From: Perkinsela sp. CCAP 1560/9
Lineage: Eukaryota > Protista > Euglenozoa: Kinetoplastea
Assembly (NCBI GenBank): GCA_965644495.1
Contig: CBFFSA010000093.1
Location: 1-11,374 of the forward strand
Direction of reading: 5' to 3'
Length of the DNA: 11,374 nucleotides
Both the position numbers and the translations under genes were made by a program. Shown here piece after piece: positions 706 through 11,374 of this stretch (positions within the stretch are counted from its first letter, which is position 1; each line of letters starts with the position of its first letter). The notes below the pieces were generated by a model that saw nothing but the letters and a program-made list of their open reading frames with translations, searched no databases and had not been told where the DNA came from.

Positions 706-2213
706 TTAATCAAAAAAATGTTTCAATTGAGGAAGGAGGTTTTCTCTCGAGAGTTTCTTGTATACTAATCGACACCCAACCACAAACCCGATGGGAATAA
801 TAAGACAACAGATCCCAAAGTAGAGGGAATAACACTCATGTCCAGTGCAAAAAAGCTCACCTAGAAGAATTATCAGAAGGGAGAAAGGAAGAAAAGAGAG
901 GTAACTTTGTAAGGATATATACCAGGAGGAGTTTGTCGATCATAGAGAACTCCAGACAAAAGATCGAAACACAAAGGACCGAAGGCAGGAGAGAAACAAA
1001 GAATACCATAAATCTGACACCACTGAAACCCTGTTTTTTTCTGACGATTTAAATCAAGCAACATTCCAGGGGAACCAAGATTGAAGATCTGAACCCACAA
1101 TGCGCCATACACTAACGCATTCACGAAGGAGAGGCAATGCAGAATCCAAAGATTCATGGTTTGCCATAATATCAATGAGGATGCGAAGAGAACGGTAGGA
1201 AAGATCACAAAAAAGAGAGTCGAGGGCCAGTGATTACCCTCCTTCACCAGAGTGACAGCAATTCTTCCCACTGCTTGTCCTACACAAAACTCAAAAAAAA
1301 TAAGAGTAAGTTGGGTCTCATTTCCCCCAATGGCCAACACCATGCTCCCCGAGTTGTTGTAAAAATTGACAGTCACACCAAACAAGATAAACAAAGCAAA
1401 GATTCCCAACCACAACTCTTCAGTCATCAGCAGCCATTTCAAGCGAAGGGAGAGAGTATTTGCTCCACTCTTTTCCTCTTCTCCCTCTCCCTCACCCTCT
1501 CCCTCTCCCTCTCCCTCTCCCTCTCCCTCTCCGACCACTCCCACCTCCATTTCTTGGGGGTCTGCCTTCAAATAAGTCACCTCTTCAGTTTCAGGCTTAT
1601 CGTTGAAAGGGATCTTCAGAATGATGAAAACAACAAAGAAAAAGAGAGAGACAAAGCTAGCGGCACAACTCCCCAGGTAGAACCAACACAGTTTCATTTG
1701 ACGGTTTCCTTTGACCAGGTGGTAGACAACAGAAGCCAAACCACCGGAGACGGCAAACAATACCATAAACACCTTTTTCGCATAATCCACAAGTTTTTTG
1801 CTCACCTCATGAGAGAGAACCTTCGTCGCTAAGTCAGTGAAGATTGCAATCATGGGAATAATGCAAGAAACAAGCCCTACGCACGCGATCGTTAAGCTAA
1901 ACGCCACGGCAGTAAAGTTTCCAGGAGCAATGAGGACCGTTATAGCCGACAATGCCCATCCAATCACCGCAAGAATCAACGAACCCAACACTGTAGGCAC
2001 AGCCAAGCAAGTGGCGAGATACCCCACAAATCCTTGAACAGCAAGACTGCTTGTGTAACATAGCGACCCGATCAAATTGATTTCCTTTTGGGTGAAGCCA
2101 CCCTCGATTTTGATGTCGGTCGCAATGGCACCGAACGCATAGAAAATCCCACCACTGAGGGAAATCAGTAGCAGGCAAACCAAGGCGAGAACTACGATCT
2201 GCCAACCCTGCAT
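706..2213 (-). CDS. MFS transporter, nodulin-like (NFD4/MCH1/OFA-like) family; exons 2213..923 and 860..706, 481 aa
   Basis: About 12 hydrophobic helices in two halves separated by an acidic central loop; N-terminal GGIFYAFG and C-half GRI motifs. Removing phase-1 intron 861-922 replaces the spurious ORF end with ...GVLYDRQTPPGELFCTGHECYSLYFGICCLIIPIGFVVGCRLVYKKLSRENLLPQLKHFFD*, giving the LYD...CxGxxCY plus final helix typical of nodulin-like MFS proteins. Exon lengths 1291+155 = 482 codons. Confidence 0.88.
861..922 (-). other. Spliceosomal intron, 62 nt, phase 1
   Basis: G|GTATAT ... polypyrimidine ... TTCTAG|GT; removal restores a conserved C-terminus in frame. Confidence 0.88.
1480..1532 (-). 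repeat. (GAGGGA)n coding hexamer microsatellite encoding (GE)n in the MFS central loop
   Basis: ctccct repeats on the + strand; translation GEGEGEGEGEGEGEGEGE. Confidence 0.9.
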
Positions 2214-3076: not shown

Positions 3077-3636
3077 AGAACAAAGATCGTCTTCAAAAAA
3101 AACAACGAACAAACAGAAATTGAACTTTCAGTAGAAATTGAAAATGTGGAACCGAGCGATTTTCAGGAAACCGGAACCGAAGAACAACAAGAGAAAAGAG
3201 AGATAACAAGGAGAAAAGAAGAAGAAGAAGAAGAGATAACAGAAAATCTCATGAAACTTCCTTCTTCTTCTCTTCAGATTCGAATTTTCCAATTTCTTTC
3301 TCCTCGTGACTTGTGTGCTTGTCAATTTGTTTGTAAGTCAAAGGGCATCCCTCTCACTTGCAAATGTTCTCTGGTGGCGTCATGCAATGAAGGTTTCTCT
3401 TTCTTCTTCTTTTTCTTCTTGTGGTGTGACTTGAATTTTAAAAGAAATTAAATGAAAAAAAAAGGTTTTGTAGATCGCAGAAGAAAGGCCAACACAAGTC
3501 GACAAGAAGCTTCTGAATGAAAAAAAAAAACAAAGGAAAATGGAAAGGGGAGTTTAAAAATGCTGTCGCCCGCCTCGAAACCCCAAGGCCTGTTGTCAGA
3601 AAGAAAAAAATTACTCTCTGGGTTACAGAAACAAAG
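3077..3636 (+). pseudogene. F-box protein gene, frameshifted (pseudogene or assembly errors); 5' end uncertain, candidate ATGs at 2922 and 3001
   Basis: LMKLPSSSLQIRIFQFLSPRDLCACQFVCKS (3248-3340) fits the F-box pattern LP..L...IF.FL...DL.....VCK. A +1 shift gives RASLSLANVLWWRHAMK (the LW motif), then intron 3393-3473, then IAEERPTQVDKKLLNEK, a shift in the A11 run at 3520-3530, and NKGKWKGEFK (post-F-box WK..F motif). Confidence 0.72.
3393..3473 (+). other. Spliceosomal intron, 81 nt, phase 0
   Basis: AAG|GTTTCT ... TTTTGTAG|ATC; low-complexity body. Confidence 0.65.
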
Positions 3637-7334: not shown

Positions 7335-10217
7335 TTATTCTTCTTGCTGGGAGGAACAAAGCTTCTCCCCCTTCTCTTCTCCTCCCTTCTCTTCCTTTTC
7401 TCCCTCTTTCTCCTCTTTTTCTTCCTTCTCTTCCTCCTTCCCCTTCTCCTTTTCGTCCCTCTCTTCCTCCTTCTCTTCCTCCTTCCCCTTCTCCTTCTCC
7501 TCCTTCTCCTTTTCGTCCTTTTCGTCCTTTTCGTCCTTCTCTTCCTCCTTCTCTTCCTCCTTCCCCTTCTCCTTTTCGTCCCTCTCTTCCTCCTTCTCTT
7601 CCTCCTTCCCCTTCTCCTCCTTCTCCTTCTCCTTTTCGTCCTTTTCGTCCTTTTCGTCCTTCTCTTCCTCCTTCTCTTCCTCCTTCCCCTTCTCCTCCTT
7701 CCCCTTTTCCTTTTCGTCCTTTTCGTCCTTCTCTTCCTCCTTCCCCTTCTCCTCCTTCTCCTTTTCGTCCTTTCCGTCCTTTTCGTCCTTCTCTTCCTCC
7801 TTCTCTTCCTCCTTCCCCTTCTCCTTTTCGTCCCTCTCTTCCTCCTTCTCTTCCTCCTTCCCCTTCTCTTTCTCCTCCTTCTCCTTTTCGTCCTTTTCGT
7901 CCTTCTCTTCGTCCTTCTCTTCCTCCTTCCCCTTCTCCTCCTTCCCCTCCTCCTTTTCTTCCTCCCCCTTTTCTTCTTCCTCCTCCCCTTTCTTTTGTAA
8001 TTGAAAAGTATTTCTCACAAAAGGATTCATTGAGGCTATAATTTGAACTCTCCCAATCTCTTCCTTCCCCTGATAAACAATCACATCGAGGTCATGTTTG
8101 CCAGGGTTTTCAAAAGTGAAACTGGAGTTCCATATCACTCGCTTTTTCTGCACTGTCTTCACTTCTGTTTCTTGTATTTTATCACCAACTTTGACTTGCG
8201 TCCACACCTCAGAAGAAGATGAAGGTGAAGGCGAAGGTGAAGGTGAAGCAGATGAAGATGGGTCTTCTTCTTCATCTTCTAAGAAGGGAAGGTACAGATC
8301 ATTCACCCCTACCACAATACTATCACCCAATGAACAACGAGAGAGTAAGATAGAGCCCAAATTTTCATTCTTCTTGGGGTGTGTGGTAAGATCCATTGGA
8401 TCACAGTCATCTCGTGCGTCTCCCACACGCTTAATAGCCTCTACAGCCAGTGGTAATTGCGTAACTGCTACTGCTCCTGCCTCTTTCGTTAAATCCGCGA
8501 TTTTTTTCTTGGTTTCTTCCTCGCTTTCTTGAACACGACCTCCCGCAAGGAGAATACCAGCTGCTCCTGCTCCAACAATACCAATAAAAACGCTCTTTCT
8601 TGTACTTTCTTTTTGTTTTTCATCTCCTTTCTCCAATTTGTAGCATCCTTTGAGCTCAAAGTCGGAGGTGACCCTGATGATGCAATAGTAGTGATGAGAA
8701 TCCATGACAACACCATCATCATAAAGAGAGATTTCGAGAAGAGATTCGTCGAGAGGATTTAAGGGATCGTTTCCGTATTTTAGAGGTTCTAATAGGAACA
8801 CCTGATTGAAATTGGGGTTGCCTGACTTCACAGCAGTGCCAGTCCCGTATTTTGCTCCTTGCCACGAGACCATAGCAAAATATCGTCGAATTGAAAGAGA
8901 CTTCGCACTCAGAAGAACCAGCTTGATTCTTCCATCTTGATCGAGAAGAAAGGGGTTGAAGTCGAGATAGAGGGCCAGCGCATTGACTGGTTGGGAACAA
9001 AGCTTCTCTGCATCTTCCTCTTTCCCCTTCTCCTTCTCCTTCTCCTTTCCCTTTTCCTTCTCTTTCTCCTTTCCCTTTTCCTTCTCTTCCTCCTTTCCCT
9101 TCTCCTTCTCTTTCTCCTTCCCCTTTTCCTTCTCTTTCTCCTCTTTTCCCTTTTCCTTCTCTTTCTCTTTCTCCTTCCCCTTCTCCTTCTCTCCCTTTTC
9201 CTCCTTTTCTTCTCCCTTCTCCTCTTTCTTTTGAAGGTAAAAAATGTTTCTCACAGGTTTCTCTGAGGATGGAATGTTGACTCTCCCAATTTCCTCCTTC
9301 CCCTGAAAAACAATCACTTCGAGGTCACGGTTGATCCCAGGGTTTTCAAAAGTGAAACTGGAGTTCCATATCACTCGCTTTTTCTGCACTGTCTTCTCTT
9401 CCGTTTCCTGTGGTTTTCCAACTCCAACTTTGACTTGCACCCTCATCCCAAGTGAAGAAGATGAACACAAACATGAACATGAACATGATGAAGATGAAGA
9501 GGGAGAGGAAGAGGAAGAGGAAGAGGAAGAGGAAGAGGAAGAGGAAGAGGAAGAGGAAGAGGAAGATGAAGAGGAAGAGGAAGATGAAGATGGGTCTTCT
9601 TCATCTTCTAAGAAGCGAAGGTACAGATCATTCACCCCTACCACAATGCTATCACCCAATGAAAAACGGGAGAGAAAGATCGTTCCCAAATTTTCATCCT
9701 TCTTAGGGGGTGTGGTAAGGTCCATTGGATAGTCCTCTACAGCCTTTGGTATTTGACAAACTTCTGCCGCTGCTTTCGATAAACTTTCGAAGTCTTCTTT
9801 GTTTGCAAGTTGAATTGATGTTGTTCCACTTGCTTTTGCACTTAAAATCATGCTATTTCTTTTCCTATTTCTTTTTTTTTCATCTCCTTTCTCCAATTCA
9901 TAGTGTTTTTGAAGCACAAAGTCGGAGGTGACCCTGATGATACAATAGTAGTGAAGAGAATCCATTACAACACCATCATCATAAAGAGAGATTTCGAGAA
10001 GAGATTCGTTGTATCTTGCAAAAGGAGAATGTAAGTTGAACACCTGATTGAAATTGGGGTTGTCTGACTTCAAAGCAGTACTCGTCTCGTGTTTTACCCC
10101 TTGCCACTTGATCACAGCAAAATATCGTCGACTTGTCGAAAGAGACTTAGCACTGAGAATAATCAGTTCCATCTTTCCATCGATATCGGGTGGGCTGAGG
10201 TTGAGGAAGAGGGCCAT
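7335..10217 (-). CDS. 960-aa tandem C2-domain protein: two copies of [C2A - linker - C2B with Ser insert - K/E-rich tract]
   Basis: C2 pattern LIILSAKSL..YFAVIKWQG.K..T.....NPNFNQVF.L....LEISLYDD occurs twice; a second C2-like pattern VVGVNDL..VQVKVG...QETE....KRVIWNSSFTFE....LEVIV.Q...EIGRV.I also occurs twice. Uninterrupted 2.9-kb ORF with no intron. Confidence 0.85.
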   Translation of the reverse strand: MALFLNLSPPDIDGKMELIILSAKSLSTSRRYFAVIKWQGVKHETSTALKSDNPNFNQVFNLHSPFARYNESLLEISLYDDGVVMDSLHYYCIIRVTSDFVLQKHYELEKGDEKKRNRKRNSMILSAKASGTTSIQLANKEDFESLSKAAAEVCQIPKAVEDYPMDLTTPPKKDENLGTIFLSRFSLGDSIVVGVNDLYLRFLEDEEDPSSSSSSSSSSSSSSSSSSSSSSSSSSSSSPSSSSSCSCSCLCSSSSLGMRVQVKVGVGKPQETEEKTVQKKRVIWNSSFTFENPGINRDLEVIVFQGKEEIGRVNIPSSEKPVRNIFYLQKKEEKGEEKEEKGEKEKGKEKEKEKEKGKEEKEKEKGKEKEKEKGKEEEKEKGKEKEKEKGKEKEKEKGKEEDAEKLCSQPVNALALYLDFNPFLLDQDGRIKLVLLSAKSLSIRRYFAMVSWQGAKYGTGTAVKSGNPNFNQVFLLEPLKYGNDPLNPLDESLLEISLYDDGVVMDSHHYYCIIRVTSDFELKGCYKLEKGDEKQKESTRKSVFIGIVGAGAAGILLAGGRVQESEEETKKKIADLTKEAGAVAVTQLPLAVEAIKRVGDARDDCDPMDLTTHPKKNENLGSILLSRCSLGDSIVVGVNDLYLPFLEDEEEDPSSSASPSPSPSPSSSSEVWTQVKVGDKIQETEVKTVQKKRVIWNSSFTFENPGKHDLDVIVYQGKEEIGRVQIIASMNPFVRNTFQLQKKGEEEEEKGEEEKEEGKEEKGKEEEKDEEKDEKDEKEKEEKEKGKEEEKEEERDEKEKGKEEEKEEEKDEKDGKDEKEKEEKGKEEEKDEKDEKEKGKEEKGKEEEKEEEKDEKDEKDEKEKEKEEKGKEEEKEEERDEKEKGKEEEKEEEKDEKDEKDEKEKEEKEKGKEEEKEEERDEKEKGKEEEKEEKEEKEGEKEEKGGEEKGEKLCSSQQEE
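7365..7995 (-). repeat. Coding K/E/D/G minisatellite (about 210 aa) with higher-order periodicity
   Basis: The + strand is almost pure pyrimidine; the ERDEKEKGKEEEKEE block recurs at about 7454, 7577 and 7829 (123 and 252 bp spacing). Confidence 0.92.
9015..9232 (-). repeat. Coding K/E-rich tract of unit 1 (EKEKGK repeats)
   Basis: Translation KEKEKGKEKEKEKGKEEEKEKGK... Confidence 0.9.
9460..9592 (-). repeat. (GAGGAA)n microsatellite encoding poly-Ser plus SCSCSCLC inserted in C2B of unit 1
   Basis: Direct reading; the unit 2 equivalent is the shorter SSSASPSPSPSPSSSS. Confidence 0.9.
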
Positions 10218-10367
10218 CGCATCGACTTTTGAATGGGGTTGTTGGGAGCTAAACGAGAAAGAAAAAAGAACAACTTTCTTTTTTGATTTTGATAAAAACC
10301 AAATAATACTAAATAAGGATTAAAAATGAATGTTTTTTTTTTTGTCGGAAAAACTATTTTCGGGAGA
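10218..10367. promoter_or_regulatory. Putative compact bidirectional promoter between the C2 gene and the RING-HET gene
   Basis: Only 150 bp (108 bp if the ATG at 10326 is used) of AT-rich DNA lies between the divergent start codons. Confidence 0.45.
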
Positions 10368-11374
10368 ATGAGCGGATTTGATGGAGGAGAAGGCGAGAAA
10401 GGAGAAAGAAAAAGAAGAAAGAAAGAAGAAGAAAAAGAAGAAGAAGAAGAAGAAGAAGAAGAAGAAGAAGAAGAAGAAGAAAAAGAAGAAGAAGAAGAAG
10501 AAAAAGAAGAAGAAGAAGAAGAAAAAGAAGAAGAAGAAGAGGTGGAAAGAACAGGACAAGTAAAGTGTGAAAGGTGTTCTGAGATAAGATTATTCTGGCG
10601 TCTTCTTTGTAAGCATTCTTTTTGTGAAGACTGTTTAAAACAATGGTTTATTTCTCCATCATCTCGCAAAGGCAATTGCCCTGTTTGTTACATCGAGAAC
10701 GAACCATACAACGGAATGTGTTACATCCCTTACAGTGAGATTTTCGATATCGAAAGGGATAATGCCCAGATTTGGGAGAACTTCCAAAGATACCAAGATC
10801 TAAGATTAAAAACTGATGCTGTGAAACAACTTAACTTCAATGCTTGGAATAAGGGGAATCTCCGTTGTCTCCTTTTCATTTCGCACAGATGGGAAACGCC
10901 AGAGCATCCTGACAAACGCAAAAATAAGTTGTCTATTATCAAGGATATGGTTCAGGCGGTTTATGATGAGGCGGTTAAAAACGAGGATTCCATTTATTCT
11001 CAGCGAGATAATGGTCGCATGAATCGGGTGTCGTTAAAGGAGTGGGCGATGATGAATAAAGAATCCTTTAAGGATTTTGTAAAGGGGATTGGTGTTTGGA
11101 TCGATTACTCTTGTATCCCCCAACCCCAACCCCGAGGTGGTGTAAAGCTGACCAAAAAATTGAAAAATGAAAAAAGAGAAGCGCTTTGCGAGTTAAACAA
11201 CATCATTTCCTTCTCTACTCTCTTGGTCATTGATACTCACAAGTGCAAGGGTGATAAGGGTCGGTGTTCAGGGGACCCTAGATGTGGGTGGCATTTTTTG
11301 TCGAGAACTTGGTGTTTGGTCGAGCTGATTGTTTCAGAAGCCTATTCTATCTCCATCGTTTACCTCAAGCGAAG
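10368..11374 (+). CDS. RING finger (C3HC4) - HET/TIR-like domain fusion protein, 3'-partial (at least 335 aa); alternative in-frame ATG at 10326
   Basis: Frame 3 is open from the ATG to the window end: MSGFDGGEGEKGERKRRKK, poly-Glu, then CERC-x10-CKH-x2-CEDC-x14-CPVC (10566-10688, with W four residues after the sixth ligand), then MCYIPYSEIF...FQRYQDL, FISHRWETPEHPD (10875-10913), VWIDYSCIPQ (11094-11123) and FLSRTWCLVEL (11295-11327), the three hallmark HET-domain (PF06985-like) motifs. Confidence 0.88.
   Translation, partial: MSGFDGGEGEKGERKRRKKEEEKEEEEEEEEEEEEEEEKEEEEEEKEEEEEEKEEEEEVERTGQVKCERCSEIRLFWRLLCKHSFCEDCLKQWFISPSSRKGNCPVCYIENEPYNGMCYIPYSEIFDIERDNAQIWENFQRYQDLRLKTDAVKQLNFNAWNKGNLRCLLFISHRWETPEHPDKRKNKLSIIKDMVQAVYDEAVKNEDSIYSQRDNGRMNRVSLKEWAMMNKESFKDFVKGIGVWIDYSCIPQPQPRGGVKLTKKLKNEKREALCELNNIISFSTLLVIDTHKCKGDKGRCSGDPRCGWHFLSRTWCLVELIVSEAYSISIVYLKR
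10425..10541 (+). repeat. (GAA)n coding microsatellite encoding poly-Glu interrupted by Lys
   Basis: Direct reading; in frame with the RING-HET ORF. Confidence 0.92.

Follow-up and report, generated by a model that had tools for sequence, protein, structure and literature searches.

Does the end of this DNA encode a RING finger fused to a divergent cell-death enzyme? The window, which is the whole stretch of 11,374 nucleotides that was analysed, is the complete contig C93 of its source assembly (G000). A preliminary description had reported a stop-free frame absent from the list of open reading frames. Zero stops were indeed found across the 335 codons of the frame at 10368-11372, and the frame is missing from the list only because it runs off the contig end. 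It opens at 10317, directly behind a TAA, and a further in-frame ATG is present at 10326. Our analysis shows a genuine RING finger in one frame with a divergent HET-like domain, which has a predicted TIR fold and a catalytic-type Glu. The protein is probably a defence enzyme that is anchored in a membrane and has acquired a RING, and its relatives form a little-studied family whose members are probable immune enzymes. The features are collected in Table 1.

Table 1. Positions of the genes, domains and motifs in the window
Feature	Position	Strand	Remarks
Multi-pass transporter-like gene	873..2213	-	L003 homologue, 57% identity
C2-domain repeat protein, divergent neighbour of the RING-HET gene	7335..10217	-	
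RING-HET open reading frame	10368..11374	+	335 codons, runs off contig end
Basic cluster (residues 14-19), then poly-Glu low-complexity tract (residues 20-58)	10407..10541	+	
C3HC4 RING finger	10566..10688	+	Pfam zf-C3HC4 (PF00097); eight zinc ligands
HET-like, TIR/NDT-fold domain, residues about 117-335, C-terminal part missing	10716..11374	+	
FISHRW...HPD, first strand and loop, TIR betaA equivalent	10875..10913	+	FISHRW 10875-10892, HPD 10905-10913
WIDYSCIPQ, HET-family WxD block	11097..11123	+	
SRTWCLVEL, RxWCxxE helix with Trp315 and putative catalytic Glu319	11301..11327	+	Glu codon GAG 11322-11324

The source assembly contains two different eukaryotic SSU rRNA genes (C58:32767-34872 and C11:510796-512820), which we take to be one AT-rich, amoebozoan-like gene and one kinetoplastid-like gene. 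The large contigs have long open frames and little low-complexity sequence; C93 is rich in low-complexity sequence, and the poly-Glu tract of the predicted protein is typical for coding sequence of the host amoeba. Host-type sequence is found on the small contigs, C93 and C106 among them. G000 is a mixture of an amoeba host and a kinetoplastid-like symbiont, with C93 in the amoeba fraction. A Paramoeba-type host with intron-rich genes and a Perkinsela-type endosymbiont with intron-free genes (PMC5601477) would fit this mixture. The host genome seems only partly assembled in G000, and therefore absences there mean little. Neither the C-terminal continuation nor a paralogue of the RING-HET gene was found in this partial sample of the host.

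The RING finger is complete, as had been described. All eight zinc ligands (C67, C70, C81, H83, C86, C89, C104 and C107) are present with C3HC4 spacing, and Pfam zf-C3HC4 matched with 24.3 and 27.5 bits against a cut-off of 21. By chance, the RING pattern appeared once in 100,000 shuffles.

The second domain is more divergent. The positions of its motifs and of the Glu codon agree with the preliminary description. The RING is recognised directly by its profile, but the window domain gave no direct match to Pfam HET (PF06985) or to the TIR profiles (PF01582/PF13676, TIR_2). NCBIfam, PADLOC and PDB-sequence searches also matched neither HET nor TIR. A match to AGT was rejected as a 40-residue chance match. 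A word-based protein search with the single window domain gave no matches, and with the full-length clade alignment only the first member of that alignment was among the matches listed. A full HMMER search with the window domain detected 46 relatives at E<=1e-3, and a profile search added about 47. The closest relative, P0001 (45% identity, E 1.6e-23 to the window protein), lies above the Pfam HET cut-off (24.1 against 22.5 bits), and it is one of three among the 46 family members that match PF06985. The HET assignment of the window domain by profile is thus a transitive one, through P0001.

Other family members include P0010, an Aspergillus protein labelled HET-domain, an alveolate protein and a protein from an Acidobacteria-type genome. 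By structure, fungal HET proteins and haptophyte proteins that carry ankyrin, LRR or MORN repeats are also related (TM 0.54-0.65); the fungal HET cluster of the structural atlas (Atlas) gave TM 0.54 with the window domain. Fusions to Ank, LRR, MORN or TPR modules are present among the relatives. In the 46-member family, FISHRW/HPD, WIDYSCIPQ and SRTWCLVEL fall in columns with 90-100% conservation. The RxWxxxE motif ends in Glu in 92 of 95 first matches among the relatives, and in two of the exceptions the first match is spurious, with the Glu located further along the protein. Trp315 is located four residues ahead of Glu319, on the alphaC-equivalent helix. The claims of an intact catalytic-type Glu and of a HET/TIR-like assignment were therefore upheld, the latter by the P0001 match, the P0010 label, the Atlas comparison and the TIR/NDT fold. 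Judged from sequence and model, the second domain is a distant relative of the fungal HET domain with a predicted TIR fold.

HET domains are remotely related to TIR domains, and their mechanism is undetermined (PMC10197012, PMC10890737, PMC12881547). One review states that how they kill cells is unknown (PMC10890737), and another gives neither biochemistry nor structure (PMC12881547). Since no HET biochemical activity is found in these two reviews, NADase activity of the window domain is putative. The AlphaFold model of the domain has a pLDDT of 84.7. Foldseek detected nothing for this model in the PDB and viral libraries at E<=0.001; a wide structure search placed TIR domains and deoxyribosyltransferases at the top. 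The first match was the TIR domain of SpbK (Z 5.5, rmsd 3.3, 94 aligned, with an incomplete model), a best value that falls in the tool's range of 'possibly a common arrangement'. Deoxyribosyltransferases (Z 5.1-5.4, 9-13% identity) and the SARM1 TIR domain (Z 4.7, rmsd 3.1, 90 aligned) were detected in the same search. The absence of the last fold elements from the model accounts in part for the modest Z values. With the full-length P0003 model, the structure search was swamped by helical-bundle matches.

SARM1 561-658 aligns to 56-225 of the model, and E642 of SARM1, the catalytic residue (10.64898/2026.09.21.753143), and Glu319 each lie 16 residues before the end of the aligned range. Apparently, Glu319 is in register with E642 in the model, as read from the ends of the aligned ranges and not from a residue alignment.

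In a quick tree, the window protein clustered with P0001-P0004, P0007, P0008, P0017 and P0025 (SH-aLRT 88); P0044, a protein without membrane helices, was also inside the clade. The complete clade members possess two to six predicted membrane helices behind the HET-like domain. An R-x-x-L-x-x-W-A block and a YSI-like strand behind the Glu helix are common to the window protein and the clade. In the sister gene at locus L003 (P0001), the open frame closes shortly past the Glu helix, where an intron-like pyrimidine tract lies. Farther on, coding continues in exons with the family's downstream motif and hydrophobic helices; these exons were read singly, and a joined gene model was left out. Because its nearest relatives continue into membrane helices, the window protein is probably a RING-HET-TM protein. 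The described architecture thus stands for the RING and the HET-like domain, but it missed that the gene is cut at the contig end and that the clade has C-terminal membrane helices.

The divergent neighbour of the RING-HET gene starts 150 bases from the RING-HET start. Its first C2 repeat scored 25.8 bits against a cut-off of 22, and long Glu/Lys linkers are present. At L003, C2-like homologues also flank the RING-less sister gene, but downstream and on the same strand; a conserved head-to-head C2/HET pair was therefore rejected. The divergent neighbour of the sister gene is instead the transporter-like homologue. L003 and the window probably represent a rearranged block of an ancient duplication, which comprises the transporter, the HET-like gene and the C2-like genes. 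The L003 intron behind the Glu helix is absent from the window copy. The tetranucleotide profiles of the two loci correlate with r 0.98, and about half of the fourfold sites have changed. Since one contig of the L003 sample (ERZ24900291) is 99.9% identical to a G000 locus of symbiont type, so that the sample contains the same symbiont DNA, L003 was rejected as a sure orthologue from another species. Its simplest origin is an old duplication of the block within one amoeba, that of the window, or else a co-occurring relative. Elsewhere in the window, at 3146-3451 (+), an F-box motif was detected above the Pfam cut-off, a second ubiquitin-system module within the same 11 kb.

TIR genes were detected near the clade gene in three of the six fetched clade loci (L005, L006 and L053), and none were seen at L003, L007 and L054. 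L005 has a cluster of several TIR genes with three HET-like genes, L053 has TIR genes downstream of the clade gene, and a Roc-COR gene at L006 gave faint TIR matches. In the part of the window's genome that was sampled, the search for TIR_2 genes found none. These neighbourhoods fit a defence role of the clade, but they are suggestive only, because TIR genes are abundant in some protists. Several other genes were observed at these loci. L005 (ERZ26867466 contig, 1-17242) resembles a protist defence island: two HET-TM genes lie in tandem, one of them apparently frameshifted, and a ZZ-like zinc finger-HET gene occupies 11147-13306. An SMC/Rad50-like ATPase, recognised by eye from its motifs, lies beside the TIR genes and the HET-TM gene at L053:8043-10922 (-), and a second, split HET-TM family gene is convergent to P0002 at L007:7731-9099 (-). 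Separately, P0037 (L008:10001-11386) and its relatives form a large bacterial HET-like branch of about 450 aa with the same Glu and no Pfam, NCBIfam or PADLOC match. They are candidate undescribed anti-phage effectors, although L008 is not an obvious defence island.

The explanation that we favour, and hold to be moderately probable, is a membrane-anchored defence effector in which the HET-like domain is a Glu319 enzyme and the RING an accessory module. In the protist clade, the HET-like putative enzyme domain normally comes first and several membrane helices last, and the window copy would have gained the N-terminal acidic tract and the RING. Once clustered, the HET-like domain would use Glu319 as the nucleophile to break the N-glycosidic bond in NAD+ or in a related nucleotide, and this cleavage would deplete the nucleotide or make a signal. 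The RING would tune abundance or clustering, either by weak or E2-selective ubiquitination or by dimerisation. For the window copy, we infer a membrane tail and an immune role; the enzyme activity, its substrate and the RING activity are likewise putative.

How much the RING contributes depends first on its distribution. The RING pattern was absent from all 106 retrieved proteins, and no RING was found in the relatives' loci scanned in six frames, the L003 sister locus included; the relatives were searched as 50% clusters, inside which RING-bearing members may sit. A metagenome scan with the clade patterns gave seven loci, where in no case a RING shared the frame, and scans of viral and prokaryotic genomes gave no matches. 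An Atlas feature search for a RING plus the domain gave no named match. A RING+HET protein has not been described in the literature searched, which agrees with the preliminary description, and the combination did not prove common. Because the rest of the clade is without a RING, the simplest reading of the sequences is a gain in the window copy. The fusion looks like a one-off add-on, known from one incomplete assembled copy. N-terminal add-ons do occur, since the distant family member P0112 has a ZZ-like zinc finger upstream of its HET-like domain. The RING might then be a recent drifting passenger, a pseudoligase or zinc-binding spacer in a protein that acts like its RING-less relatives. RING pseudoligases exist (PMC11992055), other genes in the window are rearranged, and two E2-contact residues of this singleton RING are non-canonical. 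However, the eight ligands, Trp93 of the central helix and Pro105 of loop 2 are all kept in a fast-changing locus, which suggests selection. A RING donor or close paralogue RING that would mark a very recent gain was not found in G000, where the host genome is partly sampled. We consider the passenger explanation doubtful.

The non-canonical positions are Arg69 and Ser71 in loop 1 and Tyr108 at the linchpin. The loop-1 hydrophobic residue of RINGs takes part in E2 binding. Among 14 other RINGs of the assembly, comparators that are symbiont-type, the position of Arg69 is Ile, Val or Leu in 13 and that of Tyr108 is Arg or Lys in nine. The linchpin residue tunes RING activity, with effects from slight loss up to abolition, and non-cationic residues lower it, although XIAP, whose linchpin is Tyr, is active as a ligase (PMC12326332). 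Since Arg69 and Tyr108 occupy E2-activating positions, the ligase activity may be weak, and the RING is more likely to be a weak, E2-selective or dimer-dependent ligase than a strong one. The RING and its ligands are as had been described, but the three residues depart from the active consensus. This weakens the earlier proposal that an active RING self-ubiquitinates and keeps the level of a toxic NADase low as long as no pathogen or symbiont blocks the proteasome. The proposal draws on a RING with intact zinc ligands in one frame with a catalytic-type domain, on the kept Trp93 and Pro105, and on the XIAP precedent. Against it are the deviating residues, the lowered activity of non-cationic linchpins (PMC12326332, PMC11992055) and the fact that all relatives manage without a RING. 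We judge it unlikely.

The domain might instead be a non-NAD nucleotide glycosidase or a non-enzymatic adaptor, as the Glu helix is common to the TIR and NDT folds. In the structure search, TIR domains and deoxyribosyltransferases came out level, and the amoebal TirB and TirD showed no NAD+ processing (10.64898/2026.04.30.722052). However, the TIR neighbourhoods and the repeat fusions of the relatives fit immune effectors, and the near-invariant Glu argues against a pure adaptor. This explanation is very unlikely. Finally, the fusion might be an artefact of assembly or of splicing, located as it is near the end of a host contig that is short and of low coverage, in a mixed assembly, and known from that assembly alone. 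This is highly improbable, as the junction (10689-10715) is unique, non-repetitive and in frame, its single-copy DNA matches itself only, and no pyrimidine-rich splice acceptor lies between the RING and FISHRW, the first HET-like motif, which places both domains in one exon.

The most far-reaching possibility is that one chain forms a RING-HET-TM receptor, anchored in the membrane, whose ubiquitin ligase activity would gate a HET NADase as an amoebal death switch; we regard this as improbable. If true, gating would occur by self-destruction until the proteasome is blocked, or by ubiquitin-driven clustering. The receptor would act as a cell-autonomous death switch, in the host of a eukaryotic endosymbiont, and would be the first architecture to couple ubiquitin directly to a HET/TIR-type enzyme. 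Beyond the window, the family, with its near-invariant Glu in amoebal, algal, fungal and bacterial members, offers convenient test cases outside fungi for HET domains as NADases, and its intronless full-length members add to this convenience. With membrane-tailed members in TIR-rich gene clusters, the clade points to a branch of immunity in protists that is so far undescribed. To this, the RING fusion would add ubiquitin control, on the strength of one incomplete assembled copy.

Finally, we compared the window protein with known systems. The fungal HET domains (PF06985; HET-E/D/R, Bh, TOL, PIN-C and HET-6) have the SHxW, WxD and RxWxxE blocks in common with it. In contrast to them, the window domain is amoebal, lies below Pfam detection and has a RING in front; its clade ends in membrane helices, whereas the fungal proteins carry NACHT/WD40, ankyrin or lectin modules. 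No member of the protist HET-TM clade possesses a RING, unlike the window protein. With the TIR NADases (SARM1, SpbK, ThsB, plant TIRs and TirC), the strand-helix order and, apparently, the register of the Glu helix are alike in the model. The window domain differs from these in a long helical insertion between the first two strands, an N-terminal extension, the lack of a TIR or TIR_2 sequence match and an activity that is putative. Dictyostelium TirC is a toxic, regulated amoebal TIR NADase with a possible membrane helix (10.64898/2026.04.30.722052). The nucleoside 2'-deoxyribosyltransferases are the tied best fold matches, with a Glu on the equivalent helix. In those enzymes, this Glu is the nucleophile. 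They are stand-alone salvage enzymes without immune-type partner domains, unlike the window protein. As for the RING, the full ligand set, the helix Trp and the loop-2 Pro are found likewise in RNF141, TRIM5/30 and XIAP-type RINGs, whereas Arg69 and Ser71 in loop 1, Tyr108 and the fusion to a putative nucleotide hydrolase set it apart from the C3HC4 RING E3 ligases.
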